The notes beneath the pieces were generated by a model that was not told the origin of the DNA, ran no database searches, and saw only the letters and a list, made by a program, of their open reading frames with translations. A stretch of DNA of 64,000 nt from Hyalangium minutum (GTDB lineage Bacteria; Myxococcota; Myxococcia; Myxococcales; Myxococcaceae). The stretch is taken from positions 92,604 through 156,603 of the forward strand of contig NZ_JMCB01000024.1 of NCBI RefSeq assembly GCF_000737315.1, read 5' to 3'. Of this stretch, positions 1,642-18,066 are shown piece after piece. The translations under genes were made by a program, and so were the position numbers. The number at the start of each line of letters is the position of its first letter. Within the stretch, counting starts at the first letter, position 1.

Positions 1642-1703
1642 GTGTCTCCTGGCCGTCCCGAGCGGGAGGCACGTCGCAGTCTACTCCGGCTGGCGCCGCG
1701 CAC

Positions 1704-2120
1704 TCATCCCCGGTTGAAGTAGACCGACGCCAGGCTGATAAGGAAGTAAGGAGCGAGACCCGCCGCGCCCGCGTAGTCCTTGGCCACGCGCTGGCCGAAG
1801 AGCAGCGACAGCAGAGTCACCCCCGACACTATTCCCCCGGCGCACGCCAGCTTTGGGCTGCCGGTGGCCACCAGGGCGATGACGCCCGCGGCGCTGAGAA
1901 ACCCCGCCGCCACCTCCAGCAGTGTCAGGGTGAACAGCAGGAACGCCGGCTGGCTCTTCATCACCGGCACCTTGGAGAAGACCGACGTCACGTAGCCGAG
2001 GTTGCCCTTCCAATCGAAGACCTTGTCCAGGCCGGATTGAACGAAGGTGATGGCCAGGAAGGCAGCGGGCAGGACCTGCAGCATCCACAGGGGGAACTGA
2101 GGCGAGTCGAGCGGCGGCAT
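1704..2120 (-). CDS. DoxX family membrane protein
   Basis: 138 aa, about 4 hydrophobic helices, FLAITFVQSGLDKVFDW motif. Confidence 0.75.
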   Translation of the reverse strand: MPPLDSPQFPLWMLQVLPAAFLAITFVQSGLDKVFDWKGNLGYVTSVFSKVPVMKSQPAFLLFTLTLLEVAAGFLSAAGVIALVATGSPKLACAGGIVSGVTLLSLLFGQRVAKDYAGAAGLAPYFLISLASVYFNRG

Positions 2121-2237
2121 GGCCCCACTCTACCCGGCTCGCGCCCGTTCCCAAGGCCCGTCTCACCGTGAGGCAGTCAGCGTTTCTCCGGTTTTTTTCT
2201 TTTCCCCTCGGGGCCACCGGCTCTTAAGTCGGGGACT

Positions 2238-3329: not shown

Positions 3330-3353
3330 GGCGGGCCGTGGGCCGTGGGCTGC

Positions 3354-3566
3354 CTACCAGGAGGCGAGCCCCTCTTCCCACATGCTGTCGTCGTAGTCGT
3401 CCACCACCACGGGCCGGGGCTGCGAGACGGGGCGCACGCCCTGGGGCCGCATGGGCGGCTCGCTCGGGGACGGAAGCTCGGGGAGCGGCGGCACCAACGC
3501 CAGCGGCGGAGCGGCCACGGGGCGCCTCGCCTCCACAGTGATATCCCGCTCAGTCATGGCCAACAT
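3354..3566 (-). CDS. Small Pro-rich hypothetical protein (70 aa) with acidic/aromatic C-terminus
   Basis: MLAMTERD...VVVDDYDDSMWEEGLASW; purine-rich upstream region; candidate sigma-54 promoter 45 nt upstream. Confidence 0.6.
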   Translation of the reverse strand: MLAMTERDITVEARRPVAAPPLALVPPLPELPSPSEPPMRPQGVRPVSQPRPVVVDDYDDSMWEEGLASW

Positions 3567-3611
3567 GGTCCCCCCTCTGTGGGTCCGAGTTGTGAATTCA
3601 AGGTCAGCATC

Positions 3612-3627
3612 AGCAATCGCCATGCCG
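3612..3627 (-). promoter_or_regulatory. Candidate sigma-54 (-24/-12) promoter
   Basis: Minus strand CGGCATGGCGATTGCT: GG-N10-GC with TTGCT. Confidence 0.5.
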
Positions 3628-3870
3628 CCTCTGCAACGCCCTGCGAGCCACACCGGGTGAGCCCGCCCCTGCCCTCGTCCGCGCCTTCTACGCACGAAGG
3701 CCCCAGGAAGTTTTCTTCCGTCGTATGAGGCGTGGACGTCTGACGGAAATCCGTGGCACGCGAGCCACGGGTGTCCGCGTCCCCGTCCTTCTCTGGAAAC
3801 ACCGCCGCCGGGAAAAAGTGTCACCCGAGGAGGAAAGCGCGTTGCTCCTGGGTACCCTTAACGCAGGGCG

Positions 3871-6045
3871 TCAGCGTCCCGTGCCCTTCGCCCCACGCTT
3901 CGAGCCGGGCTTCGTGGCGGCATCCTTGGCGGGCGTGTCACCGCGGGCGGGCGCGCCAATGGACTTGTAGACCTCCTTCAAGGCGTCCGGGGAGCTGGCA
4001 AGGCGCACCGCAGCCTTGGTGGCCTCTTCGGGCGACAGCTTGCCGAGCACGCTGCGCTCCAAGTGCTGCTCCAGGAAGCCCTGCGTGGTGTCCACCTTGA
4101 GGTCCGTCACCTGGCCCTTGTCGTCCACCACGGGGATGAGCCGGGGCGCGGCGATGAAGAGCACCGCGGGCACGTCCGCGGCCTTCACGCGCTGGACCAC
4201 CTCGTCTCGCAGCTTGGGATCGAACTTGATGCCCTTCTGCGTCACCAGGGTGCGGATGCCCTCGTAGTCACCGGTAGCCTTGATGACCATGAGCCGGGAG
4301 AGCAGCTCGCCCACGGCCTGGCGCATCTTCGCGTAGTCGGTCACCACCCAGTACGTGTGGCCCTTCTCCACTTCCTGCTTCACCGCGCCCTTCTCCACCA
4401 GGAAGTTCACGGTCATGTGGTGGCCGCGCTGGTGGTCCTCCTCGAAGGAGTCCCCCTTGTCCACGCGGGCCAGGTTGGTGAGCCCCTCCACGAGGAAGTC
4501 GCGGTACATCTGCTGGGCGATCTTCTCGGCGTCCGGGGACAGCTCGGTGAGCGCCGGATCAAAGGCGTGCCAGAGCGCCACGAGGTCCGCGCGGGCCTCC
4601 TCCAGCGTGTTGTCGTACTCCTTGAGGAGCGCCGAGGGCAGCTGCTTGCCCAGCTTCTTCTTGTCCACCTGTCCAGAGGCGTGCCCGAGCACCTCGTGGA
4701 AGGCCACCAGCCACTTGCGCGCGGTGACGGAGTACTTCTGGGCCTGGGCGCGATCCTCGGACGTGCGGGAGAACTCGACGGCCAGCGGCAGCCGCCGCAG
4801 CGCCGAGGCCGCATCCATCACATTGGCCACGAGGATGCTCTTGCTGCCGTACTTCTCGCGGAGGTTCTGCTCGTTGGGCAGGTTGATGCCGGCAGGGGGC
4901 TGTGGGTGGGTGGCCACGAAGTCCACGGCCTTGGCCACCGGGAGCGTCACCTTCTTGCGCTTGTAGGTATCCGGCCAGGGCATCCGGTCCTCGAAGTACT
5001 GGGCCTTCTTGCCGATGAGCTCCATGATCTGGTTCTCCTCGGCGTTGCGGTAGTTGATGAGGGCCTCCCACTGGCCCTTCTGCCCGCGCGGATCCACGTA
5101 CGTCTCGATGAAGCCGATGTTGCCGTCCACCACCGTGTCCGCCTTCAGCCAGGCGATGTTGTAGGCCTCCCAGTCCTTGGGGTTGCCCGTCTGGAAGTAA
5201 CGGATGAGCTTGGCCAGCACCGGCTTCTGCTTGGCGCTGGCGGACTTCATGGCCTCGGTGAGGCTGGCGTTCACGCGCGACAGCTCCGGCGCGTAGAGGC
5301 CGGGAGCAATCTTGTTGTCTCCGGCGCGGAAGATCTGCTCCACCAGCTTCCCGTTCTCCTTCACCACGCGCGAGTTGAGCGGGTTCTTCTCCTGGAACTT
5401 CTCCACCTCGGCCAGCGTCACGCCGGGCCCGTACGAGGTGCTCGCCGAGGCCGTGAGCATGTCCTGCCCGGCCGGGGGCGACTTGGAGATGAGGGTGGGC
5501 TCGAAGGAGGCATCGAAGAGGGTCGGCTGCACCTCCTTGAGCCAGGTACGCAGGGCGTACTCGTCCTTCATGCCCACGGGCGCACCGGCACGGAAGGCGC
5601 GCACGGCAGCAGCCTCCAGCTCGCCCGCGGTGAACTCCGGGACGAACTTGTGCCCGGTCACCTGGTCATGGTTGCCCGTCTCCGCATAGAAGCGCGTGAG
5701 GTAGTTCTTGAACTTCTTGTCGAAGAGGCCCGGGCCGCCCGCACCCTCCAGGCCATAGAGGTAGACGCACTCGAGCAGCCGCTTGATGCCCACGAGCTTC
5801 CAGCCGAGCTGGTCATAGCCAATGTCCTCGCCCGCATGGGCCGCCAGGGTCATGTACCAGGCGACGCGCTTGTCCTCGGGGGAGAGTCCAGCCACACCCG
5901 GCGCGAAGATCTGCGCATAGGCCTGGTTGCCAATGCGCTCCTTGAGGAACGTCTTCGCGGTGGCCGGGGCGCTCTTGTTCGCGGACTCGGCTGGCTGTGC
6001 CTGGGGGGCGGCGGCCAGCGCGGCGGACAGGAGGAGGGCGATCAT
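3871..6045 (-). CDS. Secreted peptidase family M49 (dipeptidyl peptidase III-like)
   Basis: Signal peptide; HEVLGH hexapeptide (HEXXGH); LEEARAD motif; GFIETYVDPRG. Confidence 0.85.
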   Translation of the reverse strand: MIALLLSAALAAAPQAQPAESANKSAPATAKTFLKERIGNQAYAQIFAPGVAGLSPEDKRVAWYMTLAAHAGEDIGYDQLGWKLVGIKRLLECVYLYGLEGAGGPGLFDKKFKNYLTRFYAETGNHDQVTGHKFVPEFTAGELEAAAVRAFRAGAPVGMKDEYALRTWLKEVQPTLFDASFEPTLISKSPPAGQDMLTASASTSYGPGVTLAEVEKFQEKNPLNSRVVKENGKLVEQIFRAGDNKIAPGLYAPELSRVNASLTEAMKSASAKQKPVLAKLIRYFQTGNPKDWEAYNIAWLKADTVVDGNIGFIETYVDPRGQKGQWEALINYRNAEENQIMELIGKKAQYFEDRMPWPDTYKRKKVTLPVAKAVDFVATHPQPPAGINLPNEQNLREKYGSKSILVANVMDAASALRRLPLAVEFSRTSEDRAQAQKYSVTARKWLVAFHEVLGHASGQVDKKKLGKQLPSALLKEYDNTLEEARADLVALWHAFDPALTELSPDAEKIAQQMYRDFLVEGLTNLARVDKGDSFEEDHQRGHHMTVNFLVEKGAVKQEVEKGHTYWVVTDYAKMRQAVGELLSRLMVIKATGDYEGIRTLVTQKGIKFDPKLRDEVVQRVKAADVPAVLFIAAPRLIPVVDDKGQVTDLKVDTTQGFLEQHLERSVLGKLSPEEATKAAVRLASSPDALKEVYKSIGAPARGDTPAKDAATKPGSKRGAKGTGR

Positions 6046-6126: not shown

Positions 6127-6654
6127 CTACCGGGAAATGGAAATGTAGGGATCCCAGGTGAAGTAACCCCAGGCCTTGCCCTCTGAGTCCGAGAGCATGA
6201 ACTGGATCTGATAGGTGACATTGCCTGGCTGCTGGGCGGTCGTCTGGAAGAAGAAGTCCTTGTAAGGCTGCGTGCCCACCGAGCCGATGCTCCCGCCGTT
6301 GAGCTGGGGCGTGGGGATCTTGATCGAGGTCTCGAAGGGCTGCGGAGAGGTGATCAGGCCGGCCCCCGCGGAGACCGTCATCCCGTAGGCCAGCGTGCTG
6401 TAGCCCGTGTTCATGGTCAACGAAGCGGTCCTCCAGCGAAGGATGTCGTTCGTCTTCACATCGACCTTCAGCTCGTAATACGCCTCCGCGCCACTGACCA
6501 CGGAGCGCTTCACGAGCATGTAGATGTACTCACCGGCGTTGTTCCCCAAGCCGGCGGGCCGGTCCTTCGAGCCCCGGTTGTTGCTGAAGTCCTCCACGAT
6601 GCTCTTCGCATCGATGACAGTGAGGATGTCGACGAATGGATCAGTGCTGGACAT
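6127..6654 (-). CDS. AidA/PixA inclusion-body family protein (paralogue 2)
   Basis: 175 aa; N-terminal VDILTVIDA, DILRWR, C-terminal YQIQF...GYFTWDPYISI pattern. Confidence 0.8.
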   Translation of the reverse strand: MSSTDPFVDILTVIDAKSIVEDFSNNRGSKDRPAGLGNNAGEYIYMLVKRSVVSGAEAYYELKVDVKTNDILRWRTASLTMNTGYSTLAYGMTVSAGAGLITSPQPFETSIKIPTPQLNGGSIGSVGTQPYKDFFFQTTAQQPGNVTYQIQFMLSDSEGKAWGYFTWDPYISISR

Positions 6655-6687
6655 GGTCGTGCCTTTCCTGAATTGAGGGCGAATGGC

Positions 6688-7215
6688 TCAAGAGATGATC
6701 AAGGAGGGATCCCACTTGAAGTACCCCAGGGGCGTGCCGCTGTTGTCCGTGATGACGAAAGAGAACGTGTAGCTAACCGATCCGGCGCCCTCCCCCACGG
6801 ACTGGAAGTAGAAGTCCTGGAAGTTCTGCGCCGTCGTCCCTGTCACCGTGTTTCCACTCAGCGTGGGGACCTGAACCGTCACCGAGGGCGTGATGGGGGT
6901 CGGCTGCGAGATCAGGTTCTGTCCCTGGGCGATGTCACAGGCGTAGAGCATGACGCTGTATTGGGTGTTCAGCGTCAGGGATGTCCCCCTCCAGCGGATG
7001 ACGTTGTTGGGGTGAACGGAGACGTTCAGGTTCGAGGAAGCATCTCCTTTGACCACCTCGTCGTACTTGACGAACATGTAGACCAGGTTGGAGTTCTTCC
7101 CGATGGATGTCGGCTTCTGCATCGTGGGCGGCGGCTGGACGGAGCCGAACTGCGCCATGACGCTCTCCGCATCGATGACGACGAGAATGTCGATGAGTTG
7201 CTCTGTATCGGCCAT
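6688..7215 (-). CDS. AidA/PixA inclusion-body family protein (paralogue 1)
   Basis: 175 aa; IDILVVIDA, NVIRWRG, YTFSF...GYFKWDPSLII; clearly homologous to its neighbour. Confidence 0.8.
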   Translation of the reverse strand: MADTEQLIDILVVIDAESVMAQFGSVQPPPTMQKPTSIGKNSNLVYMFVKYDEVVKGDASSNLNVSVHPNNVIRWRGTSLTLNTQYSVMLYACDIAQGQNLISQPTPITPSVTVQVPTLSGNTVTGTTAQNFQDFYFQSVGEGAGSVSYTFSFVITDNSGTPLGYFKWDPSLIIS

Positions 7216-7261
7216 GTGTCTTCTCCAGGGTGTACGAAGGGTTTAAAGGGAGCCGCCAGAC

Positions 7262-10200
7262 TCAAGGGGCCTGCTGGGTCTTCTCGCCCAGCACCAGGGT
7301 CCAGCTGTTCATGAAGTCGATCGGCTTGCTCTGCTGTACCGGGGTGTACTGCAGCCCACCCTGCGTATTCAGGCGGCTGGTCATGTAGAGCAGCCGGGAC
7401 ATCGCCGGCCCCGGGGTGGTGGGGTTGCCCTTGGAGTCCTTCAGGGCCTCCTTGAAGCGAGCGTTCAGATAGAAGGGCGGGATGGTCTGGTAGTTCAACC
7501 GGGCACGGACCGACTGCCAGCCGCTCACCTGGGACAGGGGAATCTGGTAGACGATCGAGTCGGCACCGGGCGCGGACGCCGCGCTGTAGTCGGGATCACT
7601 CGAGACGCTCGTGTCATTGCTGCCCAGGATGGTGCTCTTGGGCTCGGTGAGCAGGGCCAGCTGCTGGAGATTCAGCCCGAGCGCCTGCTCGTTCGCGGAG
7701 CGGCTCGCTGGCGGCACCCACCCCTTGGGCAGGATGCGGTTGTCCTTGACGTCCGTGAACTGCTGCAGCTCGGTGGACGTCAGCTGGTTGTAGTCGTCCA
7801 GCACCCGCACCTCGTAGATCTGCGCCTGGGTCTGGTCGGTGATCTTCTGGTAGTGGGGCTGGAGCTTCCGGTAGTCCGACGTGAATTCGCTCGGCAGGAC
7901 GTTCTTGCCATCGGGCTGGCAGACGCCCTGGCAGATGGCGCCCCAGGTGTTGGGCTGGCCGGAGGCCCAGAGGACGTTGCCGGCCGCGTCGAGCACCTCG
8001 AACTGGATGAAGGCCCGCCGGAAGCCCGCGCCGCTGGGGAACTTGTGACCCACATTGCTCCTGAGGGTCACGGTGGCGTTCAGGTTCGAGCCACTCACAG
8101 TGGGCGTGCCCACGAGCACCTGCACTGCGGGCGCCCGCGGGTTGAACTCGCCCTGCGAGGTGTTGGTGGCCAGGTCGAGAATGGACTGCTCGGCGTTCAG
8201 CAGGTTCTGGGCGAGGGTGTACTGCCGCCGCGCGTCCTCCAGCGGCGAGAAGGAGCCCACCGGCAGCTCCAGGGCGAGAAACAGGTCATCCACCAAGCTG
8301 CCATTCAGCAGCGTGAGCGTCAGCTTGCGAGTCCCCGGCGCGAGGGCCAGCGAGCCCTCCAGCGGGGCCCACTTCCCCGGGGTGGTGCTGGCAAGCCGGG
8401 CGGGGCTGCCTCCGGTGTCCTGCGAGAGGACGAGGGCCTGACACGCGCCGCTGGCGAGGCAGTACGAAGCGCCGCCCCAGGTCACCTTCACGGTGCCCGC
8501 CCCCTGGTCGATGGTGTCCGCGTACTGGGACACGTCGAAGCTCAAGGTCACGTCGCCCCCGCCCTGCCCTCCTCCAATGCTGAAGAAGTACTGCCCGTGG
8601 TTGGGCTGCACCACCGTGCTGCCGCTACCCGGCGCGCTCTTCACGGCCTGGATCTGGCTGCCGGCGGCCATCCAGCCATTGGCGTTGCCAGCCTCCGCGC
8701 CCGGGTTGGCGACGAGGTTGCCCGTCCGGTTCAGGATGGAGGGATCCTGGAGGTACGGAGGGATGGCCGAGTTGTTCTTCAGGTAGTACTCGATGCCCAG
8801 CACGTCCGGGAACTGCTGGAACATCTCGTGGACGAAGAGGTTGACGCCCAGCAGCGTGTGGCGGTTGTACTCGCGCGGTGTCAGGTCCGTGCTGGAGCCG
8901 TAGAACTTCGTCAGATCGCTGTTCACCTGCGCCACGTTCGAGTCGCCGGGCTCGTTGTTCACTGGGCTCGCCAGCTGCATGTGACACGTGAGGCACGAGG
9001 CCGTCTGCGTGGCGAAGCTGCTGTTGAGCCACTCGAAGTAGGTCGTCTGCTCATAGGCCAGCCCGACGCAGGGGTCCGTGAGGAAGTTCCCGGTGAAGTT
9101 CTTCTGGGTGGGAGGGCAGCTCGCGGGCTTGACGTAGCCGCCCCGGGCCGCCGCCTGCTGGATGGTGAGCTTGTTGCTGTACTGGTCGGGCACCTTGGGC
9201 AGCACCACCACGTGGCACGAGCCGCAGACGGTCGCATCCCGCAGGTAGTTGTGGTCCGGAGCATTGGCGGTGCTGGCCGTCTCCAGGCTCAGGCCCGCAG
9301 CGGCCATGGGCGCGCCATTGAGCCCGGAGTCGGGCCCCACGACGGTGCCCGGCCGGGTGTTCATCGAGGCCGAGAACGGGAACGGGGGCGGCTGGGTCTT
9401 CTCGCCCTGATCCCTCAGGCGGTCGGAGACGCCGCTGCCGTACACGCTCTGGGTGTCGCTGCCGTAAAAGACGGTGTAGTCCTTGCCATCCCAGGGCAGG
9501 CCGCCCTCGGGCGAGGTGGCGTGGCAGCTGGAGCACGAGACACCATCCCGGCCCAGCGCGCCGTACACCGAGTAGTCCGGCTGCGCGTACTTCTCCTTGG
9601 GGAACGGGTTGTTGTAGCCGGAGTCGGACGGCGTCGAGTACAGCATGTAGTGGCTGAAGAGGAGGTTGTTCTTCTCGGCCTGGCGCTGGCCCAGCGGTGA
9701 GTGGCAGCGCAGGCAGAGGTTGTCGACCTGCTCGGGCTGGTTGGGGGACAGGCCGCGGGTGTTCTCCACCTGCGCCAGGAAGACGGGATCGCGCGCGGCC
9801 AGAGCCTTGATGGACGCGCTCCAGTCCCCAAAGAGCGACCAGTTGGACACCAGGGAGTTGGGCGGCTGCGTCTGGAACGAGGTCGAGACCGAGGGCTGCT
9901 GCCAGAACGCCATGTTGCCCAGGTTCGTCCCCTGGGCCTTCCAATCACTGTCGTGGCAGGACTGGCACACCAGGGAGGAGTTGAAGTCGCCGGACGATAC
10001 ATTCAACCCGTTGTGCGCGATGTCCAGGTAGCGGTTGGGCAGCGGCGCCAGGGAGTCGCGCGTCAGGTTCGGGAAGGTGACATTGCCCACCTGGGAGTAG
10101 AAGTTCACGAACTGCTGCACCTGCGGGTCGCTGTCCGCCAGGGACAGCGTCAGCGTGTTGCCGTGGGGGAACACGGGATAGGGCGGCGACAGGTAGCCGT

Positions 10201-10351
10201 TGTCCGGGGTGACGGCGAGCGTCTGCGCGCCGGGCTTGACCATGCTCTGCTCCACCGAGGTGCAGGCGCCCACTCCCATTCCGATGCCCAGCGAGAGCAC
10301 GCCTGCGGCGGCGAGGACCCACCGCAGCTTGCCATGACGTTCTGTTTTCAT
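7262..10351 (-). CDS. Multiheme (5x CxxCH) cytochrome c lipoprotein with an internal beta-rich domain
   Basis: Lipobox GVGAC; CQSCH, CLRCH, CSSCH, CGSCH, CLTCH; C-terminal GHKFPSG motif. Confidence 0.85.
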   Translation of the reverse strand: MKTERHGKLRWVLAAAGVLSLGIGMGVGACTSVEQSMVKPGAQTLAVTPDNGYLSPPYPVFPHGNTLTLSLADSDPQVQQFVNFYSQVGNVTFPNLTRDSLAPLPNRYLDIAHNGLNVSSGDFNSSLVCQSCHDSDWKAQGTNLGNMAFWQQPSVSTSFQTQPPNSLVSNWSLFGDWSASIKALAARDPVFLAQVENTRGLSPNQPEQVDNLCLRCHSPLGQRQAEKNNLLFSHYMLYSTPSDSGYNNPFPKEKYAQPDYSVYGALGRDGVSCSSCHATSPEGGLPWDGKDYTVFYGSDTQSVYGSGVSDRLRDQGEKTQPPPFPFSASMNTRPGTVVGPDSGLNGAPMAAAGLSLETASTANAPDHNYLRDATVCGSCHVVVLPKVPDQYSNKLTIQQAAARGGYVKPASCPPTQKNFTGNFLTDPCVGLAYEQTTYFEWLNSSFATQTASCLTCHMQLASPVNNEPGDSNVAQVNSDLTKFYGSSTDLTPREYNRHTLLGVNLFVHEMFQQFPDVLGIEYYLKNNSAIPPYLQDPSILNRTGNLVANPGAEAGNANGWMAAGSQIQAVKSAPGSGSTVVQPNHGQYFFSIGGGQGGGDVTLSFDVSQYADTIDQGAGTVKVTWGGASYCLASGACQALVLSQDTGGSPARLASTTPGKWAPLEGSLALAPGTRKLTLTLLNGSLVDDLFLALELPVGSFSPLEDARRQYTLAQNLLNAEQSILDLATNTSQGEFNPRAPAVQVLVGTPTVSGSNLNATVTLRSNVGHKFPSGAGFRRAFIQFEVLDAAGNVLWASGQPNTWGAICQGVCQPDGKNVLPSEFTSDYRKLQPHYQKITDQTQAQIYEVRVLDDYNQLTSTELQQFTDVKDNRILPKGWVPPASRSANEQALGLNLQQLALLTEPKSTILGSNDTSVSSDPDYSAASAPGADSIVYQIPLSQVSGWQSVRARLNYQTIPPFYLNARFKEALKDSKGNPTTPGPAMSRLLYMTSRLNTQGGLQYTPVQQSKPIDFMNSWTLVLGEKTQQAP

Positions 10352-10381
10352 GTGTCGTTCCTGCTCAGTCGAGGAGAGGGT

Positions 10382-11515
10382 TCATCGCGCTGGAGTGAGG
10401 CTCTGTGCCAGCGCCTGCCCGCGGTGGGCCCAGAAGGGTGCCGCGGACCAGCGCTGCTCCAGCTGGTAGTAACGGTGGCGCGTCTGCAGGTGCGCCTGGA
10501 ACTGCCCCTGCAGGGTGTCTTCGTAGGTGCTCAGGGCTCCCGGCTCGCCCTGAAAGTGAAGGCGCAGCGCCTCCGCGGCCAGCAGGGCGGAGCGCAGGGC
10601 GTGAGAGATGCCCTGGGAGGACAGAGGATCCAGCGTGCACGCCGCGTCGCCGGCCGCGAGCCAGCCCTCGCCATGCATGCGCTCCAGCCGGGAGAGATTG
10701 GCCGGCAGGGCCAGCGCCTCGCCGGTGAAGTCGCAGGCCTCCAGCTTCCGCCGCGTCGCCGGAGCCCGCTCGAGCAAAGCCAGCCACGGCTCCGGGTTGC
10801 CCGGCTTCATCCCCCGGAGCGACTCGCCATCTCCCAGGAGGCCCGCCACCACGCGTCCCTGGGGCAAGAGCGCGGAGTACCACCAGCCCTCCTCACAGGC
10901 CTCCACGAGCGTGTGGGCGTCGAACGTCCGTCCGGGCTGGAGCTGGAAGAAGCCATACAGCGCGAAGGTCCGATCCACCGTCACGCGTCGCGCCCCTTGG
11001 GCCGTGGCGAAGACAGCAGATCGGCCCGTGGCATCCACGACGAACCGGGCTTGCAGCGCCAAGCGTCCGTCCGGCTCGGGCCGCTGCAGGAGGAGCCGGA
11101 AGCCGCCTGACTCCAGGCGCTCCCAGCCCGCGAGCTCCGTGGACAGATAGACGTCCACGCCATGCCGGGCTGCCTCCGTGGCCAGCATCTGGTCGAAGAG
11201 CCGCCGATCCAGGTGCCACCCCGGCCCCCAGGGGGAGTACAGGGAATCGTTGTACCCCAGCCCCGCGCTGCCCCAACTGGAGCACGTCCCGCTCGAGCGC
11301 AGGTGCCCCTGCTGCAGGAACGCCGCCCAGACGCCCAGCCTCGCCAGCAGCGTCCGGCTGTCTGGCGGGAGCGTCTCTCCGAGCCGAAGCTCCTGATAGG
11401 CCGAGCGCTCGATCAGCGCTACGGAGAGCCCTGTGTACCTGCGCAGCGCCAGGGCCATGGCCGAGCCCGCCGGGCCGCCTCCGAGGACGGCCACGTCATG
11501 ACACGTCGGGTCCAC
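10382..11515 (-). CDS. lodB: LodB/GoxB-like FAD-dependent oxidoreductase (CTQ biogenesis flavoprotein)
   Basis: DVAVLGGGPAG Rossmann motif, LGETLPP, VVDATGR, AAGDAACTLDPLSSQG; GTG start 2 nt after the lodA stop (ORF-track start at 11743 lies inside lodA). Confidence 0.85.
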   Translation of the reverse strand: MDPTCHDVAVLGGGPAGSAMALALRRYTGLSVALIERSAYQELRLGETLPPDSRTLLARLGVWAAFLQQGHLRSSGTCSSWGSAGLGYNDSLYSPWGPGWHLDRRLFDQMLATEAARHGVDVYLSTELAGWERLESGGFRLLLQRPEPDGRLALQARFVVDATGRSAVFATAQGARRVTVDRTFALYGFFQLQPGRTFDAHTLVEACEEGWWYSALLPQGRVVAGLLGDGESLRGMKPGNPEPWLALLERAPATRRKLEACDFTGEALALPANLSRLERMHGEGWLAAGDAACTLDPLSSQGISHALRSALLAAEALRLHFQGEPGALSTYEDTLQGQFQAHLQTRHRYYQLEQRWSAAPFWAHRGQALAQSLTPAR

Positions 11516-11517
11516 GA

Positions 11518-13440
11518 TCAGCTTCCCGAGTCCGTATGGGTCAGAGGCCGCCGCTGCACCTCCAGGAACCGAGGTGAACCGGTCCCGCTCTGCTGGATGA
11601 TGAAGCCCAGGTCCTTCCAGTTGTAGACCATCCCCTCGTCCTTGTTGAACTGGACGTCGGTGGGGCGGGTCCAGTACCCCTGCGCGACCTTGCCGTTCTC
11701 GTCGGTGTAAGAGACGTAATAGGGCCGCTGGGCGGGCCACCACCAGATCAGGCTGTGATCAATGGTCTGGTTGGAGCACTCGTTGAAGTCCGCCTGCCAG
11801 GGCAGCGCCATGTACTTGGTGAGGTCGCCCGGCTCGAGCCCGTTGCCCGCAGTGGGCTCGGTGTCCCACTGGAGGCCCGTCCCGGTGGGCGCGAGGGGCT
11901 TGATGCGGAACGGCTCGCTGTAGATCTTCAGGTTCCGGGACAGCCACGTCATCTCGATGCCCGGACAGAACGGCCCTCCGACACAGTTCTCCAGGGTGGC
12001 GCGATCCAGCTGCGCTCCCGGCCCCGAGGAGTCCGAGGGCGTGGACCTGTCGCACAAGCCCTGGTCGAACTGCCCCAGCAGGAAGTACTGGGTCGGGGTG
12101 AGGGTCATGTAGTTACTGGGCGGGGCGATGGAGTGACTGATGGGGTTATCGCCCGCGAGCTTGGGCATTAGCCCAGGCGACACGGTGTTCTCATCTCCAG
12201 GCGCCCGGAGGAACGTGAAGAACGAGGAGGCACTGCCATTGGGCAACACCAGCCCGTTGTGACCCGCGTTGCCCTGCGAGTTGACCGCGGCCACCCACTG
12301 ATAGACAGGTGGGCGGCTGAGGATGGGTTGGATCTCCGCCTGGAAGTTGGGCTTGTAATCCGGGTTCCATTTGTCCGAATAGGTGCCCGGATCGTAGATG
12401 TCCGTGTTGTAGCCCGCCCCCTGGACGAACGCGTTGTAGATCGTGTCGTACAGGGTGACCATGTTGAGGATCTGCGGGGCATACGCTGGCGGAGCTACCA
12501 GCACCCACGCGGGGGTCACCTCCACCTTCTCGCCCGTCTCCAGATACACCGTCGCCGAGATGGGACCGTCAGAGGTGTCATCCCACCAGAAGTTGTTGTT
12601 GGCGTAGGTGTCGATGCGCGGCTGAGGGTAGGCGTACTTCTGGATGGTAGCGTTGTACTGGTTGTAGTTGTCGGAGCCGAGGGCCTTCAAGAGGGCCGCC
12701 TCGAAGGCCTCCACGGTAGCGTAGGGCTGGTCCACCACTTGGGGCTGCAAGAGGTCGGCGATGGCCTGGGGTATCGCATTGTCGCTCACCATCGCCTTGA
12801 CCACGGCCGAAGTGACGTCATAGGCCGCCGAGCACCCGGAGTTGCCCAATCCTCCCCGCACATACAGGTAGCCGCTGTTGTCCGCGGAGATCTGCCCCAG
12901 GGTGGTGATGTCACTGCCCTCCGGGATCAAGCCCTTGGGAGGGAAGCTCTCGGGATATCCCATGGGGGCCTGCCCCTTGGCGAAGTCCGCTTGCTGAGGG
13001 GTCGAGTGGATGCCCCGGCAGGAGATGGTCCGAGGGCCGGAGTCAATGATGAAGGTGTTGCGATCCTTCCCCTCGCTCCTCGGGTTCCTCAGCGGCTGGT
13101 TCGAGTGGTTGCCGTCAGACCCGTAGGTCTGTGAAAACTCGTACCAAGAGGCCTTCTTGTTGGCCAGGTGCACCGTCCACTCGATGTCCTGGATGTTGCC
13201 CTGTCCCGGGCCCACGGGCCGCCCGTTCGGGCTCGTGGAGTCATAGGCATACACCTGGAAGCGAGCCGCCTGCCTCCGAAGCCCTCCCGCGTTGTCCCGG
13301 AACTGGGTGACAGGTGTCTTGCCATCCAGCTCGAGGGGCAGCCCTCCCGCGGTGACCGGCGCGATGTAGTACTCCTGGCTGTTCCCAACGCGTGCAATGC
13401 CAATCGCTGGATGGATCTTGTAGGTCGTGCTTGTGCTCAT
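11518..13440 (-). CDS. lodA: LodA/GoxA family CTQ-dependent amino acid oxidase
   Basis: YKIHPAIGIARVGNS start, W..HLANKKA, DDTSDGP, NCVGGPFCPGIEMTW, GDLTKYMALPWQADFNEC, WWPAQRP. Confidence 0.93.
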   Translation of the reverse strand: MSTSTTYKIHPAIGIARVGNSQEYYIAPVTAGGLPLELDGKTPVTQFRDNAGGLRRQAARFQVYAYDSTSPNGRPVGPGQGNIQDIEWTVHLANKKASWYEFSQTYGSDGNHSNQPLRNPRSEGKDRNTFIIDSGPRTISCRGIHSTPQQADFAKGQAPMGYPESFPPKGLIPEGSDITTLGQISADNSGYLYVRGGLGNSGCSAAYDVTSAVVKAMVSDNAIPQAIADLLQPQVVDQPYATVEAFEAALLKALGSDNYNQYNATIQKYAYPQPRIDTYANNNFWWDDTSDGPISATVYLETGEKVEVTPAWVLVAPPAYAPQILNMVTLYDTIYNAFVQGAGYNTDIYDPGTYSDKWNPDYKPNFQAEIQPILSRPPVYQWVAAVNSQGNAGHNGLVLPNGSASSFFTFLRAPGDENTVSPGLMPKLAGDNPISHSIAPPSNYMTLTPTQYFLLGQFDQGLCDRSTPSDSSGPGAQLDRATLENCVGGPFCPGIEMTWLSRNLKIYSEPFRIKPLAPTGTGLQWDTEPTAGNGLEPGDLTKYMALPWQADFNECSNQTIDHSLIWWWPAQRPYYVSYTDENGKVAQGYWTRPTDVQFNKDEGMVYNWKDLGFIIQQSGTGSPRFLEVQRRPLTHTDSGS

Positions 13441-13537
13441 ACGGTCCCCGTGGGGGCGTCACCGCGCCATGGGGACAAGGTAAATGAAAGGCTTTCAACA
13501 TGACAAGCACCGAAAGCCTCTCAGGGTCGATATTTTT

Positions 13538-13590
13538 CTGACATGTCAGTGATTATTGCTGACACGTCAATGGGACGGCTGACATGTCAG
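13538..13590. promoter_or_regulatory. Three phased palindromic sites upstream of lodA
   Basis: CTGACATGTCAG 13538-13549, CTGACACGTCAA 13559-13570, CTGACATGTCAG 13579-13590; spacing 21 and 20 bp. Confidence 0.7.
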
Positions 13591-13600
13591 CCCCGGCCAC

Positions 13601-14479
13601 TCAGAACGAGTGCGAGCCCTCGCCGGAGGAGTTGCCAAAACCCTCGATGATTCCCCGGTTCTGCGGCACCGTGCACGGGCAGACCTCATAGCGGCACGGG
13701 TTGGGCGCGTCCCAGAGTCGGAGCGTCCCGTCAAAGATGTTGCCCAAATGGCCATCCCCAAAGCGCTTCCCCGGGTAGCAGGAGAACGCATCTCCCTTGG
13801 GGTGGATGATGAAGTACTTGCTGCCCGCGTGGCATAAGCGCCCCTTGAGCTGGTAGCCGCGGTTTATCTGCGAGGGCGACACCATGTCCCCAAACGCCCG
13901 GTCGATGCGCCAGCGGTCCACCCAGCCGTACTTCGCGGGCTGTCCATTCACGCGCATCAGCTGCGGGTAGAACTTGATGCCCGCGCCCTCGAAGCGCTCG
14001 CGGCTCTCCGCCACTTCGGGGACATGGCCGGGGACCACCACGCTGTTCACCACGAAGGTGGCGCGAGGCCACTTGGCCAGCAACTCCTTCACCGCACGGG
14101 CCTTCTCGAAGAACTCGGCCTCCTCTACCTCCTCGCGGTGCAGCGAGCACGAGAAGGTCCGCAGCTGCTCTCCCGCCGCCTCGATAAAGGTGGAGATGAC
14201 CCGCAGCGGCGCGGACAGGTTGGTGAGCAGGGACACCTTGTGCCCCGCTGCCGCAAGCCGTTGCGCTACCTCGGGCAGCCGCTTGAGCATGAAGGGCTCG
14301 CCGCCAGAGATCTTGAACTCCCAGCTCCCGGGGAGCGCCGTGAGGGTGGCGAGCGCCGCCTCGAGCTGCTCGTCCGTGGGCCCGCCGATGCCGGGCATGT
14401 GCTTCTGGACGCAGTAGGTGCAGCGGTAGTTGCACCCACCGACGATGTTCCAGCTCACCGTGGGCCGAGGACCGCTCAT
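13601..14479 (-). CDS. Radical SAM protein with C-terminal SPASM/twitch-like Cys cluster
   Basis: CNYRCTYC; ISGGEPF; CHAG...SCYPG...GNI...CRYEVCPC; start MSGPRP overlaps the upstream stop by 4 nt. Confidence 0.88.
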   Translation of the reverse strand: MSGPRPTVSWNIVGGCNYRCTYCVQKHMPGIGGPTDEQLEAALATLTALPGSWEFKISGGEPFMLKRLPEVAQRLAAAGHKVSLLTNLSAPLRVISTFIEAAGEQLRTFSCSLHREEVEEAEFFEKARAVKELLAKWPRATFVVNSVVVPGHVPEVAESRERFEGAGIKFYPQLMRVNGQPAKYGWVDRWRIDRAFGDMVSPSQINRGYQLKGRLCHAGSKYFIIHPKGDAFSCYPGKRFGDGHLGNIFDGTLRLWDAPNPCRYEVCPCTVPQNRGIIEGFGNSSGEGSHSF

Positions 14480-15516
14480 GGCAGCTCCCCTGCCTCGAGC
14501 ATCTCGCGCAAGTCCCGGGCCGCCGCAAAGTTCATGTCGTGCTTCCCGCAGCGCGCGCAGCCTGGGTAGTACTCGCCCCGGTGGAGGCGCTGGCGCACGG
14601 CCTCGTACGCGGGAGCGCGCCACACCTCCTTGAAGGGACCGTCCTTCACGTGCCCGGCCTCGATGTGCTCGCAGCAGAAGAAGACGCGCCCATCCACGTA
14701 GACACGGCTGTAGAGGTAGCCCGCGAAGCACCCGGTCTCCTGCCCCGAGGGCCACTTCCCCGAGAGCTGCGCCTCATACGCGTCCAAGTTGTGCTTCACC
14801 TTTAGCGCCTTGGCGAGCTTGCGCGCCGCGGGGATGAGCTCTGCGAGGACCTGCTGCTTCTGCTCGGCGGTGAGCGCGTGGTGCTCGGTGCCCTTGGGCA
14901 CGTCGCCGACCTTGAAGGAGGAGCGTGCGCCCAGCTCGTGCGCCAGCCGCACCATCTCCGGGAGCTCCGTGTAGTTCACCCGGTTGATGACCTGCACGAG
15001 GTTCACCGCCGTGGTGTCCCCCACCTGCCGGACGCCCTCCTTGAGCCGGTGGAAGGTCTCCAGCGGCTGGTTGGGGTGATAGGCCACGTACGTCTCCGGC
15101 GACGCGGAGGCCATGTTCAGCAGGAGCTGGTCCACCGCCAGTGCCCGTACCCGCTCCCAGGCACAGAGCGTCCCGTTGGTAATGATGGTGAGCCGCAGGC
15201 CCCGGGCCTTCACCTTCTCGATGAAGCCGTAGATGTCCGGATGCGTGAAGGGCTCGCCGCCGCCGCTGATGACAATGCGCTCGGCGCCGGCCTCGGCGGA
15301 CTCATCCACCATGCGGTGGAAGGTGGCCGCGTCCATCCGCTGCCGCTTCCACGCCACGGGCTTGGGCACCGCCAGGTCCGGCGCGTAGTTCCAGCAGGTG
15401 ATGCAGTCCAGGTTGCACGCGTTGGTGACGTCCAGGTGGACCGTCTCTGGGCCCGTGCGGGGCTTGCGCTCCAGGTAGCCCTTGAGCCGCTCTCTCAGCG
15501 CGTCTTCGTTCTTCAT
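14476..15516 (-). CDS. Radical SAM/SPASM protein
   Basis: CNLDCITC; ISGGGEPF; CFAG...DGRVFFCC...CARC; start MKNEDAL overlaps the GT stop by 4 nt. Confidence 0.88.
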   Translation of the reverse strand: MKNEDALRERLKGYLERKPRTGPETVHLDVTNACNLDCITCWNYAPDLAVPKPVAWKRQRMDAATFHRMVDESAEAGAERIVISGGGEPFTHPDIYGFIEKVKARGLRLTIITNGTLCAWERVRALAVDQLLLNMASASPETYVAYHPNQPLETFHRLKEGVRQVGDTTAVNLVQVINRVNYTELPEMVRLAHELGARSSFKVGDVPKGTEHHALTAEQKQQVLAELIPAARKLAKALKVKHNLDAYEAQLSGKWPSGQETGCFAGYLYSRVYVDGRVFFCCEHIEAGHVKDGPFKEVWRAPAYEAVRQRLHRGEYYPGCARCGKHDMNFAAARDLREMLEAGELP

Positions 15517-16601
15517 GCGAGCAACTCCAGCAGCGCCCGGGCCGCGGGCTCCGCACCGTTGCACTCCACCCGCTTCCGGGCCGCCGCGCTCAACCGCTCG
15601 CGCGTGGCCGGGTTCATCAGCTCGCGAACCGCCCGGGTCAGCCCCTCGCGCGTCAGCGGAGCGCACACCAGCCCTGCGTCCGCAGCGGCCACCTCCCTGG
15701 CGCGCTTCTCCTGGTCATCCACCATCCGCTCGAAGGGCACGAAGACGGAGGGGACGCCCGCGTACAGCAGCTCGTGAACAGCGTTGTAGCCAGCCGCCGT
15801 CACCGCCGCATCGAAGGCTGGGAGGAAGTCGATGGCCGGGTAGCGGCCCTGCAACACCACCGCGCCCTCCAGCGCGGGAGGCTGTTCGCGCCACAAGGGC
15901 CCGGCGCCCACCACCAGCCGCACACCGGGCAGTTCTCGCGCCACCTGGGCCGTGAGCGTCAGCGCCCGCGCGCCCTCGGGATCTCCTCCGCCGCCAAATG
16001 AGGCGTAGAGCAGCGTGGCGTCCTGCGGCAGCCCGAGCGCCTGCCGGGCCTGCGCGCGCGAGGGCAGCTCCGAGCGCTCGCGGATGAGGATGGGTCCCAC
16101 CGCGCGGGCCTTGGCGAGCTCGGGCAGCGGCCCCACCACGGAGATGTCCTCGTGGGGGATGAGGATCCGATCGTAGAGGCGCAGCGAGGCCTGGAGCAGC
16201 TCCGAGCCCGCAGACTCCTCGCGCTGCTCTCGGAAGACAAAGACGTTCTTCTGGCGCCAGCGCAGGGCGGGGATGAGCTCCTCGAAGCTGCCCGTGGGAT
16301 AGGTATCCACCACGAGCACGTCCGGATCGAACGCGGCCAGCGTGTTCCACGTCACCGTCTGGACCAGCTTGAGGTAGCTGCCCTTGCGCAGACCGCAGCG
16401 CTCGCGAATTGTCTTCGAGGGCAGCTTCACCGCAGCGAAGCCCTCGCGGTAGATGACATGGTCCGCCTCGGACGAGGTGAGGAAGAGCACCTCGGCCTCG
16501 GGAGAGAGGCGCTTGAGCGCCCGAGCGATGGACAGCAGCCGGGTGACATGGCCCAGGCCCAGACCGTTGACGGCATAGAAGAGGAAGCGAGGCGCGCCCA
16601 T
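15513..16601 (-). CDS. GT-B glycosyltransferase (GT28/MurG/PseG-like)
   Basis: NGLGLGHVTR, SFGGGGD, AAGYNAVHE, VPFERMVDDQ..RA. Confidence 0.85.
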   Translation of the reverse strand: MGAPRFLFYAVNGLGLGHVTRLLSIARALKRLSPEAEVLFLTSSEADHVIYREGFAAVKLPSKTIRERCGLRKGSYLKLVQTVTWNTLAAFDPDVLVVDTYPTGSFEELIPALRWRQKNVFVFREQREESAGSELLQASLRLYDRILIPHEDISVVGPLPELAKARAVGPILIRERSELPSRAQARQALGLPQDATLLYASFGGGGDPEGARALTLTAQVARELPGVRLVVGAGPLWREQPPALEGAVVLQGRYPAIDFLPAFDAAVTAAGYNAVHELLYAGVPSVFVPFERMVDDQEKRAREVAAADAGLVCAPLTREGLTRAVRELMNPATRERLSAAARKRVECNGAEPAARALLELLA

Positions 16602-17992: not shown

Positions 17993-18066
17993 CACGTACC
18001 CACTCCTCCGTCGCACGCTCCCGAGTTAACGCCAGGAGCCGAGGGAGGAGCAATGCACGTCTCTGC

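Follow-up and report, generated by a model that had tools for sequence, protein, structure and literature searches.

Described relatives and layout of the locus

The closest described relatives of the locus are the LodA/LodB and GoxA/GoxB operons (Marinomonas mediterranea, Pseudoalteromonas), which encode a two-domain (LodA_N/LodA_C) quinoprotein with the conserved Asp, Cys and Trp of the Cys-Trp quinone (CTQ) cofactor and, immediately downstream, a LodB-type flavoprotein. All characterised members of the LodA/GoxA family are oxidases that release H2O2. A second point of comparison is quinohaemoprotein amine dehydrogenase (QHNDH; qhp operon), an extracytoplasmic enzyme whose CTQ is made with a LodB-like flavoprotein, QhpG. 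Its quinone gives up electrons to the c-type haems of a second polypeptide, its dedicated partner. QHNDH differs in two respects: the CTQ belongs to the gamma subunit, which is small and cross-linked and depends on a radical SAM enzyme, and the partner is a di-haem alpha subunit; neither subunit is homologous to LodA or to the pentahaem protein described here. A dedicated cytochrome is also a feature of the membrane-bound flavoprotein-cytochrome c dehydrogenases with three subunits (of the FAD-gluconate, sorbitol and fructose type), where the canonical cytochrome has three haems and belongs to another family.

We analysed a window of 64,000 nucleotides from Hyalangium minutum, in which the genes of interest form a co-oriented run of five on the minus strand behind an operator-like array:

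13538..13590, minus strand: operator-like array upstream of lodA, three copies of a TGAC-N2-GTCA palindrome
13440..11518, minus strand: lodA-like gene, 640 aa, LodA/GoxA-family CTQ quinoprotein
11515..10382, minus strand: lodB-like gene, 377 aa, GTG start 2 nt past the lodA stop, LodB-type FAD flavoprotein
10351..7262, minus strand: cytochrome gene, 1029 aa, exported pentahaem c-type cytochrome
7215..6688, minus strand: pixA1, 175 aa, PixA/AidA-family protein 1 (PF12306)
6654..6127, minus strand: pixA2, 175 aa, PixA/AidA-family protein 2 (PF12306)

A first-pass annotation had described five co-oriented genes with gaps of 2, 30, 46 and 33 nt, and the ORF coordinates agree. Its identification of the parts (LodA, LodB, a five-haem cytochrome and AidA/PixA proteins) is borne out by Pfam and NCBIfam matches and by the CXXCH count. 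Direct sequence reading confirmed the 2-nt lodA-lodB gap, which is identical in L037 and L038, and the GTG start of lodB. No terminator-like sites were seen within the cluster, and pixA1 and pixA2 are each preceded by a Shine-Dalgarno-like sequence (GGAGA and AGGAAAGG). Targeted literature searches returned no published account of lodAB combined with a cytochrome and PixA; relative to the LodA and GoxA operons, the locus adds a conserved pentahaem cytochrome gene, and the 2015 survey of the LodA family nowhere mentions cytochromes.

The LodA-like protein matches both Pfam domains (LodA_N, E = 3.6e-58; LodA_C, E = 4.3e-40), and its residues D551, C555 and W568 align to the cofactor residues D512, C516 and W581 of M. 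mediterranea LodA (3WEU). Its NCBIfam scores were 348 bits for LodA (cut-off 600) and 167 bits for GoxA (cut-off 750), both below cut-off, and we therefore assigned it neither equivalog identity. Compared with LodA, it lacks a segment of ~50 residues between the CTQ Cys and Trp and has an insert of its own at about residues 204–276. As in the LodA group, no signal peptide was found, and a stop codon six codons upstream of the ATG makes a hidden one impossible. The LodB-like protein, the presumed CTQ maturase, scored best against the NCBIfam LodB maturase (273.8 bits, E = 2.1e-81), followed by GoxB (223.5 bits) and QhpG (186.3 bits), all below the equivalog cut-offs, and matches FAD_binding_3 and Trp_halogenase in Pfam. 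Radical SAM genes lie upstream in the window and are not conserved with the lodA, lodB and cytochrome genes.

The pentahaem cytochrome and its gene partners

The cytochrome contains exactly five CXXCH motifs (residues 129, 213, 273, 376 and 453), all of them invariant among the aligned homologues. A lipoprotein-type signal, with a positive region, a hydrophobic stretch and VGA before C30 (consistent with a lipobox), is followed by the haem domain (about residues 56–530), a CBM-like beta-sandwich insert (about residues 540–700; CBM61 and CBM16 match) and a C-terminal beta domain (residues 710–1029) with a GHKFPSGAGFRR motif. The AlphaFold2 model has a pLDDT of 88.6 and a pTM of 0.90. The best PDB match is the pentahaem c552 of Thermochromatium tepidum (5ZE8; profile E = 1e-5, Foldseek E = 3.5e-7), the structural match being partial (TM 0.28 on the target). 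With c552 and its fellow members of the PHC family (Geobacter ExtKL, Gsu2801), the window protein shares the five CXXCH motifs, of which the fifth is CxTCHM, and a beta domain after the haems with the motif H-x-x-P-[ST]-G-x-x-F-R. It is, however, 2.5 times larger, with long haem-domain inserts, the CBM-like module and a C-terminal domain of far greater size. No function has been assigned to c552, which is not known to be linked to a quinoprotein. Six His and Met residues outside the motifs are conserved (H498, H769, M147, M349, M458 and M510) and could, judging from the alignment, provide distal ligands for all five haems, which would fit a pure electron carrier.

The genes lodA, lodB and cytochrome, hereafter the triad, occur in the same order and on the same strand at 25 loci (16 in Cystobacterineae, eight in Rhodobacteraceae/Wenzhouxiangellaceae, and L056, from another lineage). 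LodA identity among these loci falls as low as 26–28%, and the CTQ Asp, Cys and Trp are kept in every triad LodA. The lodB and cytochrome genes overlap by 4 nt in L002, L003, L039 and L056. Every complete locus of the window cytochrome's clade contains lodAB, and a neighbour-joining tree groups the LodAB-linked cytochromes in a single clade, with the GMC-linked cytochromes as the next branches out. On these comparisons, the triad is the conserved core of the locus and appears to be an old and vertically coherent operon, and the adjacency of cytochrome and LodA genes probably predates the divergence of several bacterial phyla. Counting against this, the three triad clades of the LodA tree are not monophyletic and non-triad LodAs nest between them, which implies that the cytochrome was lost or transferred. 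Outside the triads, two of the closest lodA-like genes follow a gene for an exported CXXCH protein of another kind.

Cytochrome homologues without a LodA have as neighbours a GMC flavoprotein and its small subunit, which is either FAD-SLDH or a Gluconate_2-dh3 protein bearing a Tat signal. There they fill the position of the cytochrome subunit in the three-subunit dehydrogenases; L041, the sole such locus with a full gene list, has no other cytochrome gene. The window differs from these loci in having neither a GMC enzyme nor a small subunit. In more remote relatives, the core of five haems and beta domain is the same but has a cytochrome P460 domain at its N-terminal end. Both associations point to the cytochrome family as an electron-accepting module.

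Direction of electron flow and cellular compartment

We favour, at a probability of roughly 0.5, an explanation with two modules: a triad that acts as a dehydrogenase with its cytochrome, and a PixA pair that joined it later. LodB would make the CTQ cofactor on the LodA-like protein in the cytoplasm, and the mature quinoprotein would oxidise an amine or amino acid outside it. The electrons would then pass to the exported pentahaem cytochrome, probably lipid-anchored in the window organism, in place of or alongside O2. On this view the LodA-like enzyme would act as a quinoprotein dehydrogenase served by its own cytochrome outside the cytoplasm, in the manner of QHNDH and the three-subunit flavoprotein dehydrogenases. 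Electron transfer from the quinoprotein to the cytochrome was one option of the first-pass annotation, and it emerges as the best-supported reading, given the co-occurrence with lodAB and the relatives that replace the cytochrome subunit of GMC dehydrogenases. It suggests that some ‘amino-acid oxidases’ hand electrons to a cytochrome instead of producing peroxide. The oxidase activity of all characterised LodA and GoxA proteins counts against it.

That activity favours the main rival explanation, in which the LodA-like enzyme stays an oxidase and the cytochrome acts on the H2O2 as a peroxidase or in some other peroxide-handling role, reducing or consuming it to shield the producer or for peroxidative chemistry in which the PixA proteins could be a target. 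Some other LodA-like proteins include a catalase-like haem domain as a fusion, and some have ferritin-like proteins encoded beside them. H2O2 can cross membranes, which would remove the compartment problem discussed below. We nevertheless regard this role as rather unlikely: the cytochrome has no Pfam or NCBIfam match to the di-haem peroxidase/MauG families, its GMC partners come with a small subunit typical of cytochrome-linked dehydrogenases and not of oxidases, the P460 fusions indicate electron collection, and the conserved His and Met residues would suffice to six-coordinate all five haems.

The cytochrome might instead finish the CTQ of this LodA subfamily as a maturation factor, as the di-haem protein MauG completes TTQ synthesis of methylamine dehydrogenase. 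The tight coupling of lodB and cytochrome genes would suit such a role, as would P0023, a LodB-TM-cytochrome fusion; P0023 is known, however, from one metagenomic gene call alone, and an ATGA overlap misread by 1 nt would produce such a fusion artefactually. Since LodB is reported as the factor required to generate the LodA cofactor, the cytochrome has no homology to MauG, and its homologues serve GMC flavoproteins and P460 domains that need no such maturation, we consider this role very improbable.

The cytochrome must be extracytoplasmic, as every one of the cytochromes carries an N-terminal export signal, and the triad-specific Cys pairs of these cytochromes are compatible with an oxidising compartment. 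In contrast, Sec and Tat signals are missing from all triad LodAs examined, and no partner is encoded that could export LodA by hitch-hiking, which counts against the dehydrogenase reading. The compartment mismatch raised by the first-pass annotation is therefore real and general to every triad LodA, whereas lipoprotein status, which it had given the cytochrome, applies only to the window, L001, L002, L003 and L038. Melittangium, the Corallococcus/Myxococcus clade and the homologues from proteobacteria lack the lipobox Cys and have plain signal or anchor sequences instead. Colocalisation of LodA and cytochrome would be plausible, because characterised LodA is located outside the cell and proteins of the GoxA group mostly have Tat motifs.

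The PixA pair and the upstream operator-like array

Both PixA proteins match PF12306 (PixA1, E = 6.2e-34; PixA2, E = 4e-31). PixA1 has a pI of 4.4 and no signal peptide, and resembles PDB entry 4LZK in sequence (E = 2.8e-6) and fold (TM 0.63). PixA2, always the second gene of the pair, is its paralogue at 36% identity. The order of a PixA1-like then a PixA2-like gene is kept in 8/8 lineages, with PixA1 orthologues standing first in L001, L037, L038, L052, L044, L045 and L046. The inclusion-body proteins Xenorhabdus PixA and Burkholderia AidA/BCAS0292 have the same domain of ~175 residues and are likewise acidic and without a signal peptide, and the Burkholderia genes are also an adjacent paralogue pair. 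The myxobacterial pair differs in sharing operons with genes for amine oxidases and haem proteins, a setting for which we found no earlier description in the literature.

The pair follows the triad at five loci of close relatives, in at least three different flanking contexts, and is absent from the other 11 of the 16 myxobacterial triads and from all proteobacterial triads. The five genes are therefore not one ancient unit. Such a distribution would suit an autonomous two-gene module that came to lie behind the triad in a single lineage without any functional connection to it, as would the independent two-gene operon (BCAS0292-aidA) formed by the Burkholderia genes and the lack of signal peptides on the PixA proteins, unlike the cytochrome. 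We find this doubtful, as the five-gene order, with its short gaps and no terminator, is kept across all five loci and their contexts. Moreover, a haem protein adjoins the pair in 8/8 lineages with contigs long enough to show neighbours and oxidase genes do so in seven of the eight (the exception being L046-L051), an unrelated context being found in none. The nearest non-triad pairs flank An_peroxidase in three lineages, joined in L044 (Amino_oxidase and DAO) and L045 (DAO) by flavin oxidoreductase genes.

The pair is thus a younger, non-random addition to the triad. The nearest homologues of the pair elsewhere are always beside a haem peroxidase, which makes a functional tie to amine-oxidation and haem chemistry likely. 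In the two-module explanation, pixA1-pixA2 would have joined the triad in one Archangiaceae-like subclade, and the same pair would have joined a haem peroxidase in sister lineages, in some of them together with flavin amine oxidases; we infer that the PixA proteins participate in, or are targets of, this redox chemistry. The sister-lineage layout mirrors that of oxidase, haem protein and PixA pair in the window, as the peroxidase explanation would have it, and hints that what the two share may be peroxide chemistry and not the export of electrons.

The first-pass annotation had also proposed a weapon against prey or nematodes, with the PixA proteins scaffolding, packaging or co-delivering the oxidase. 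LodA-type oxidases are antimicrobial via H2O2, the hosts are predatory myxobacteria, and the oxidase and peroxidase genes that recur beside the pair call to mind a killing system built on those two enzymes. Nothing supportive of this role was found, however, and we judge it improbable: a fold search with the PixA1 model returned PixA structures and otherwise weak, uninformative matches, the cluster brings no secretion signal or delivery gene to such a role, PixA is missing from most triads, and a dedicated cytochrome would leave fewer electrons for making H2O2 and thereby blunt the weapon.

In myxobacteria, regulation of the triad appears to have its own conserved element. The window array, located by sequence reading and pattern search 108–149 nt ahead of the lodA ATG, consists of the copies CTGACATGTCAG, TTGACGTGTCAG and CTGACATGTCAG at a spacing of 20–21 nt. 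Two or three TGAC-N2-GTCA boxes, spaced by 20–22 nt, lie 85–193 nt upstream of lodA at all 16 myxobacterial triad loci and at none of the nine other triad loci. In an alignment of the upstream regions the boxes are the sole invariant columns, and the array would be the operator that controls the triad operon in myxobacteria.

Gene content of the cluster

The window has a G+C content of ∼68%, and codon-position G+C gives one clear gene set. The genes and operator-like sites of the cluster, with the genes that flank it, are listed below.

Features of the cluster and its flanks
14755–13601, minus strand: radical SAM/SPASM gene upstream of lodA, 384 aa
13538–13590, minus strand: three TGAC-N2-GTCA palindromes, 20–21 nt apart, upstream of lodA
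13440–11518, minus strand: lodA-like, 640 aa
11515–10382, minus strand: lodB-like, 377 aa
10351–7262, minus strand: protein with five CXXCH motifs (the cytochrome), 1029 aa
7215–6688, minus strand: pixA1, 175 aa
6654–6127, minus strand: pixA2, 175 aa
6045–3871, minus strand: M49 peptidase gene downstream of pixA2, 724 aa

The open reading frame coordinates confirm the gaps of 2, 30, 46 and 33 nt that the first-pass annotation had claimed for the five-gene block. The sequence itself shows the lodA TGA, then two bases, then GTG as the lodB start codon, so that lodB starts 2 nt past the lodA stop. No terminator-like site was found within the block, and Shine-Dalgarno-like sequences precede both pixA1 and pixA2. 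The M49 peptidase gene, co-oriented with pixA2, begins 81 nt 3′ of it, and the intervening sequence shows no clear terminator; co-transcription is possible but probably incidental, and the gene is not kept beside the cluster in other genomes. On the other side, the minus-strand interval 13601–18016 looks like a separate peptide-modification-type cluster, comprising two adjacent radical SAM/SPASM genes (13601–14755 and 14476–15666), a GT28/UDPGT-like glycosyltransferase and a TPR protein. Elsewhere in the window lie two very large ORFs with coding-type codon bias (54720–62954, 2744 aa; 29546–34837, 1763 aa).

The LodA-like protein matches LodA_N (PF17990, E 3.6e-58) and LodA_C (PF18417, E 4.3e-40), and when it is aligned with the crystal sequence of M. 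mediterranea LodA, its D551, C555 and W568 fall on LodA D512, C516 and W581, which form and serve the CTQ cofactor. The predicted CTQ-forming Cys and Trp and catalytic Asp are conserved among all triad LodAs, a triad being a lodA-lodB-cytochrome operon. Against the NCBIfam models, the protein scores 348.2 bits for LodA (lysine 6-oxidase, NF038172; equivalog cut-off 600) and 166.6 bits for GoxA (glycine oxidase, NF038173; cut-off 750), both under the cut-offs. On these profiles it is a member of the LodA/GoxA family but matches neither characterised enzyme. The LodB-like protein likewise falls under the cut-off of 400 for NCBIfam LodB (273.8 bits over model positions 1–360 of 361), matches GoxB (223.5 bits) and QhpG (186.3 bits) at full length, again under the equivalog cut-offs, and carries a GGGPAG motif, a candidate FAD Rossmann motif. 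Quinohaemoprotein amine dehydrogenase (QHNDH) has its small CTQ gamma subunit, the radical SAM protein QhpD, a di-haem alpha subunit and a beta-propeller subunit in one operon, an arrangement that the window does not have, as it shares with QHNDH only the QhpG-like flavoprotein. The upstream radical SAM/SPASM genes were considered as a QhpD analogue and rejected, since they are missing from all orthologous loci.

Distribution and regulation of the triad

Homologous loci were collected by a cytochrome survey in which one genome per species was scanned (36 loci), by tblastn with the window proteins, by locus look-ups, and from one metagenome locus. In this gene-neighbourhood survey, the cytochrome co-occurs with lodAB in 25 loci, with constant gene order and strand. 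Sixteen triads are from Cystobacterineae (the window, Vitiosangium twice, Melittangium, Archangium, Corallococcus, Myxococcus-like genomes and Hyalangium), eight from Rhodobacteraceae/Wenzhouxiangellaceae (Poseidonocella, Salipiger, Primorskyibacter, Tropicibacter and others), and one, L056, from a further lineage. Between the myxobacterial and proteobacterial triads, identity is 26–28% for LodA, 30–36% for LodB and 30–34% for the cytochrome. At four loci (L002, L003, L039 and L056), lodB overlaps the cytochrome gene by 4 nt.

The 32 best LodA matches (at least 48% identity) come largely from contigs equal in length to those of the 32 best cytochrome matches, and no such cytochrome was found beside the next-nearest LodA relatives inspected. 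In NJ trees, which are midpoint-rooted distance trees without support values and indicative only, the LodAB-linked cytochromes form one clade while the three LodA clades are not monophyletic, which suggests an old partnership with loss or transfer. On the best reading, the cluster is an ancient lodA-lodB-pentahaem cytochrome operon to which a younger, lineage-specific pixA1-pixA2 pair has been added. The five-gene unit of the first-pass annotation thus holds for its first three genes, whereas the PixA pair accompanies only 5 of the 16 myxobacterial triads. One genome, Vitiosangium sp. GDMCC 1.1324, carries two triads (L001 and L009) ∼200 kb apart on contig11; the cytochrome of the triad with a PixA pair is 75% identical to that of the window, and that of the triad without one 53%.

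The array of TGAC-N2-GTCA boxes recurs at the other myxobacterial triads. Two to three boxes, spaced 20–22 nt apart and 85–193 nt 5′ of the lodA ATG, are present in all 16 myxobacterial triads with or without PixA (besides the window, at L001–L013, L037, L038 and L052), and they are the sole invariant columns of the upstream-region alignment. None was found at the nine other, non-myxobacterial triad loci, or at the PixA-peroxidase loci described below. A dedicated regulator probably binds the array, whose conservation is evidence for one regulatory region dedicated to the operon. Scans found no sigma-70 promoter match and no Rfam family; two sigma-54-like candidates 5′ of lodA were rejected by eye for wrong spacing. 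Between the array and the lodA start is a 16-bp hairpin with a T-rich tail (13485–13523, minus strand), which orthologous loci do not retain; the hairpin probably terminates the radical SAM gene that lies upstream, or is incidental, and may alternatively be a 5′-UTR element.

We found nothing relevant to this combination in open-access papers and preprints, in keeping with the first-pass statement that no described system was known to combine these parts. Citreicella sp. SE45 is, we presume, a relative of Salipiger, in which a triad occurs. The 2015 LodA-family survey describes fusions of catalase-like and pfam14518 type, and, as neighbours, ferritin-like, tyrosinase and multicopper-oxidase genes; it nowhere mentions cytochromes, though Corallococcus coralloides and Citreicella sp. 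SE45 are among its genomes.

The pentahaem cytochrome as a putative electron acceptor

The five CXXCH motifs of the cytochrome, its predicted haem-attachment sites (residues 129, 213, 273, 376 and 453), are invariant across its homologues, which public records label "hypothetical". Curated libraries (Pfam and NCBIfam) give only sub-threshold multihaem matches. An exhaustive profile search recovered 549 representative clusters at E ≤ 1e-30, indicating that the cytochrome core is a large unnamed family, of which only ∼10 representatives score like the LodAB/GMC-linked branch. An AlphaFold2 model based on 71 homologues has high confidence (pLDDT 88.6, pTM 0.90) and predicts the following organisation.

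Predicted organisation of the cytochrome
Residues 1–48: disordered N-terminus
Residues ∼56–530: haem domain
Residues ∼540–700: beta-sandwich, matching carbohydrate-binding modules CBM61 and CBM16
C-terminal to the beta-sandwich: large beta domain

The top match, and the only candidate relative of solved structure, is the pentahaem c552 of Thermochromatium tepidum (PDB ID: 5ZE8; profile hmmsearch E 1e-5, Foldseek E 3.5e-7), whose superposition aligns just 217 columns with a TM-score of 0.28 on the target. Both proteins have CxTCHM as the fifth motif, and share the motif GHKFPSGAGFRR / PHAMPTGAPFRN (HxxP[ST]GxxFR). Together with Geobacter ExtKL and Gsu2801, the 5ZE8 protein has been placed in a "PHC" family. 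Six non-motif residues are conserved in the 25 LodAB-linked cytochromes (H498, H769, M147, M349, M458 and M510), enough to provide candidate sixth ligands for every haem. The Cys pairs 412/428 and 807/811 are wholly or nearly specific to the LodAB-linked clade: C807/C811 is kept in these cytochromes and missing from GMC-linked and P460-type relatives, whereas C412/C428 also occurs in half of the GMC-linked cytochromes. The pairs are candidate disulphides or a candidate partner-docking feature.

Cytochrome homologues without LodA adjoin genes for a GMC flavoprotein and a small subunit, the latter either Gluconate_2-dh3 with a Tat signal or an FAD-SLDH small subunit.

GMC-linked cytochrome loci
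L020 (Gallionellaceae): 864–5530
L026 (Acidobacteria): 9299–15033
L027 (Acidobacteria): 10001–15041
L041 (Thermoanaerobaculia): 8390–13360

At L026 these genes are translationally coupled, and L041, which is fully listed, contains no further cytochrome gene. A GMC flavoprotein, a small subunit and a cytochrome make up the three-subunit flavoprotein-cytochrome c dehydrogenases. The homologues take the cytochrome position of this layout, and the GMC-linked loci appear to be an undescribed variant of it. In more distant relatives, the same pentahaem and beta core has a cytochrome P460 domain at its N-terminus. The use of one cytochrome module by three unrelated substrate-oxidising partners is the main reason to favour an electron-acceptor role. 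We put the probability that the cytochrome accepts electrons from the CTQ quinoprotein, instead of or besides O2 (a dehydrogenase mode), at about 0.5.

LodA-like enzymes are treated as oxidases, and their product, H2O2, is both antimicrobial and a biofilm signal; that the cytochrome handles peroxide is a second reading, which we regard as unlikely. A third, that it matures the cofactor, seems very improbable. The Pfam, NCBIfam and PDB profile hits of the cytochrome contain no match to di-haem cytochrome c peroxidase or MauG. Tryptophylquinone enzymes usually fall into two groups, in which the dehydrogenases MADH, AADH and QHNDH give electrons to copper or haem proteins. If the electron-acceptor reading is true, this split between oxidases and dehydrogenases would be blurred by a LodA subfamily whose pentahaem cytochrome is dedicated to it and inherited with it, and which would offer a natural system for studying what makes a tryptophylquinone site prefer O2 or a protein acceptor. 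It would also have lodA-like genes in genomes read as respiration-linked amine catabolism rather than as a weapon, and would assign the first partner-based function to this large unnamed cytochrome family. The link between LodA-like proteins and c-type cytochromes may be wider than the triad, as two of the nearest non-triad lodA-like genes have, just 5′, a gene for an exported CXXCH protein of a different family with one or two CXXCH motifs (L053, 6708–7847; L055, 6543–7988 and 5014–6171).

The weakest point of the dehydrogenase model is the export of the LodA-like protein. The cytochrome signal ends VGA|C30, which is lipobox-like, and an export or anchor sequence is present at the N-terminus of every homologue; the exported lipoprotein of the first-pass annotation is supported for the window, with the lipobox Cys recurring among homologues only at L001, L002, L003 and L038. 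The lack of a LodA signal peptide, also noted there, extends to all 25 triad LodAs. In the window, the N-terminus (MSTSTTYKIHP) is without the twin-arginine motif typical of the GoxA group, and a stop codon 6 codons 5′ of the ATG excludes a longer form with a signal peptide. LodA has been recovered outside the cell, and the signal-less triad LodAs do not contradict this known behaviour of the family. According to the LodA-family survey, most group II (GoxA-type) proteins have a twin-arginine motif, and none is recorded for group I. One 11.8-kb JGI contig encodes both P0113, a LodA-like homologue that carries at its C-terminus three repeats of the fibronectin type III domain, which is characteristic of extracellular proteins, and P0023, a LodB-TM segment-cytochrome fusion of 1429 aa; the topology of the fusion is feasible, yet a 1-nt assembly error could also yield it.

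The PixA pair and its genomic contexts

Both PixA proteins contain PF12306 (E 6.2e-34 and 4e-31). A model of PixA1 (pLDDT 74.5) matches the PixA structures 4LZK, 4PIB and 4Q52 in Foldseek (TM 0.63–0.69), and beyond these has only weak chagasin-like and cupredoxin-like matches. A cupredoxin (amicyanin-like) role was rejected, as the pair has no conserved Cys or His and no signal peptide.

Only five triads have PixA genes next in order: those of the window, of Vitiosangium (L001), of Melittangium boletus (L037), of Archangium primigenium (L038) and of the metagenome locus L052. These are the triads with cytochromes at least 70% identical to that of the window. The 11 remaining myxobacterial triads have unrelated or convergent downstream genes. 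The five-gene order has persisted through rearrangement, as the flanking genes of the window, of L001 and of L037/L038 differ. A word-indexed protein search for PixA1 homologues returned six clusters only, and a metagenome scan with a PixA alignment one locus. The nearest PixA1 homologues away from the triads all lie in the following modules.

PixA-peroxidase loci
L044 (Cystobacter fuscus, CP022098), 6951–12682: Amino_oxidase, DAO, PixA, PixA, An_peroxidase
L045, 10001–14195: PixA, PixA, An_peroxidase, DAO
L046–L051 (L046: 3399–6028): PixA, PixA, An_peroxidase, with a sigma-54 activator adjoining

The layout of these modules is like that of the window cluster, but their enzymes are non-homologous to those of the window. 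No signal peptide was found in the module proteins of L044, L045 and L046. The order PixA1-like then PixA2-like holds everywhere. Across the eight lineages with visible neighbours, on which these statistics rest, the pair adjoins a haem protein in every one and also genes for amine or amino-acid oxidising enzymes in seven, the exception being L046–L051. Neighbours this consistent make the PixA link too regular to dismiss, and the pair is probably tied in function to the amine-oxidation and haem chemistry of its module. Peroxide-based chemistry may be the common theme. To our knowledge, there is no earlier genomic-context lead for the PixA/AidA family of this kind. In the literature the family is poorly understood; its genes are often adjacent pairs, and links to C. 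elegans virulence, or a proposed DNA mimicry, are described for Burkholderia.

Any single mechanism for the pair is at best a long shot. One such is that PixA1 and PixA2 are physiological protein targets or obligate partners of the amine-oxidising and haem module, which we consider doubtful. The soluble pair would then become an insoluble assembly, either through peroxidative cross-linking or because the LodA-like CTQ enzyme oxidises peptidyl-lysine. If true, this would provide the first biochemical context for the PixA/AidA family, and would show a bacterial tryptophylquinone enzyme used in the manner of a lysyl oxidase. The same logic would apply in Cystobacter fuscus and relatives, with a non-homologous flavin amine oxidase and haem peroxidase.
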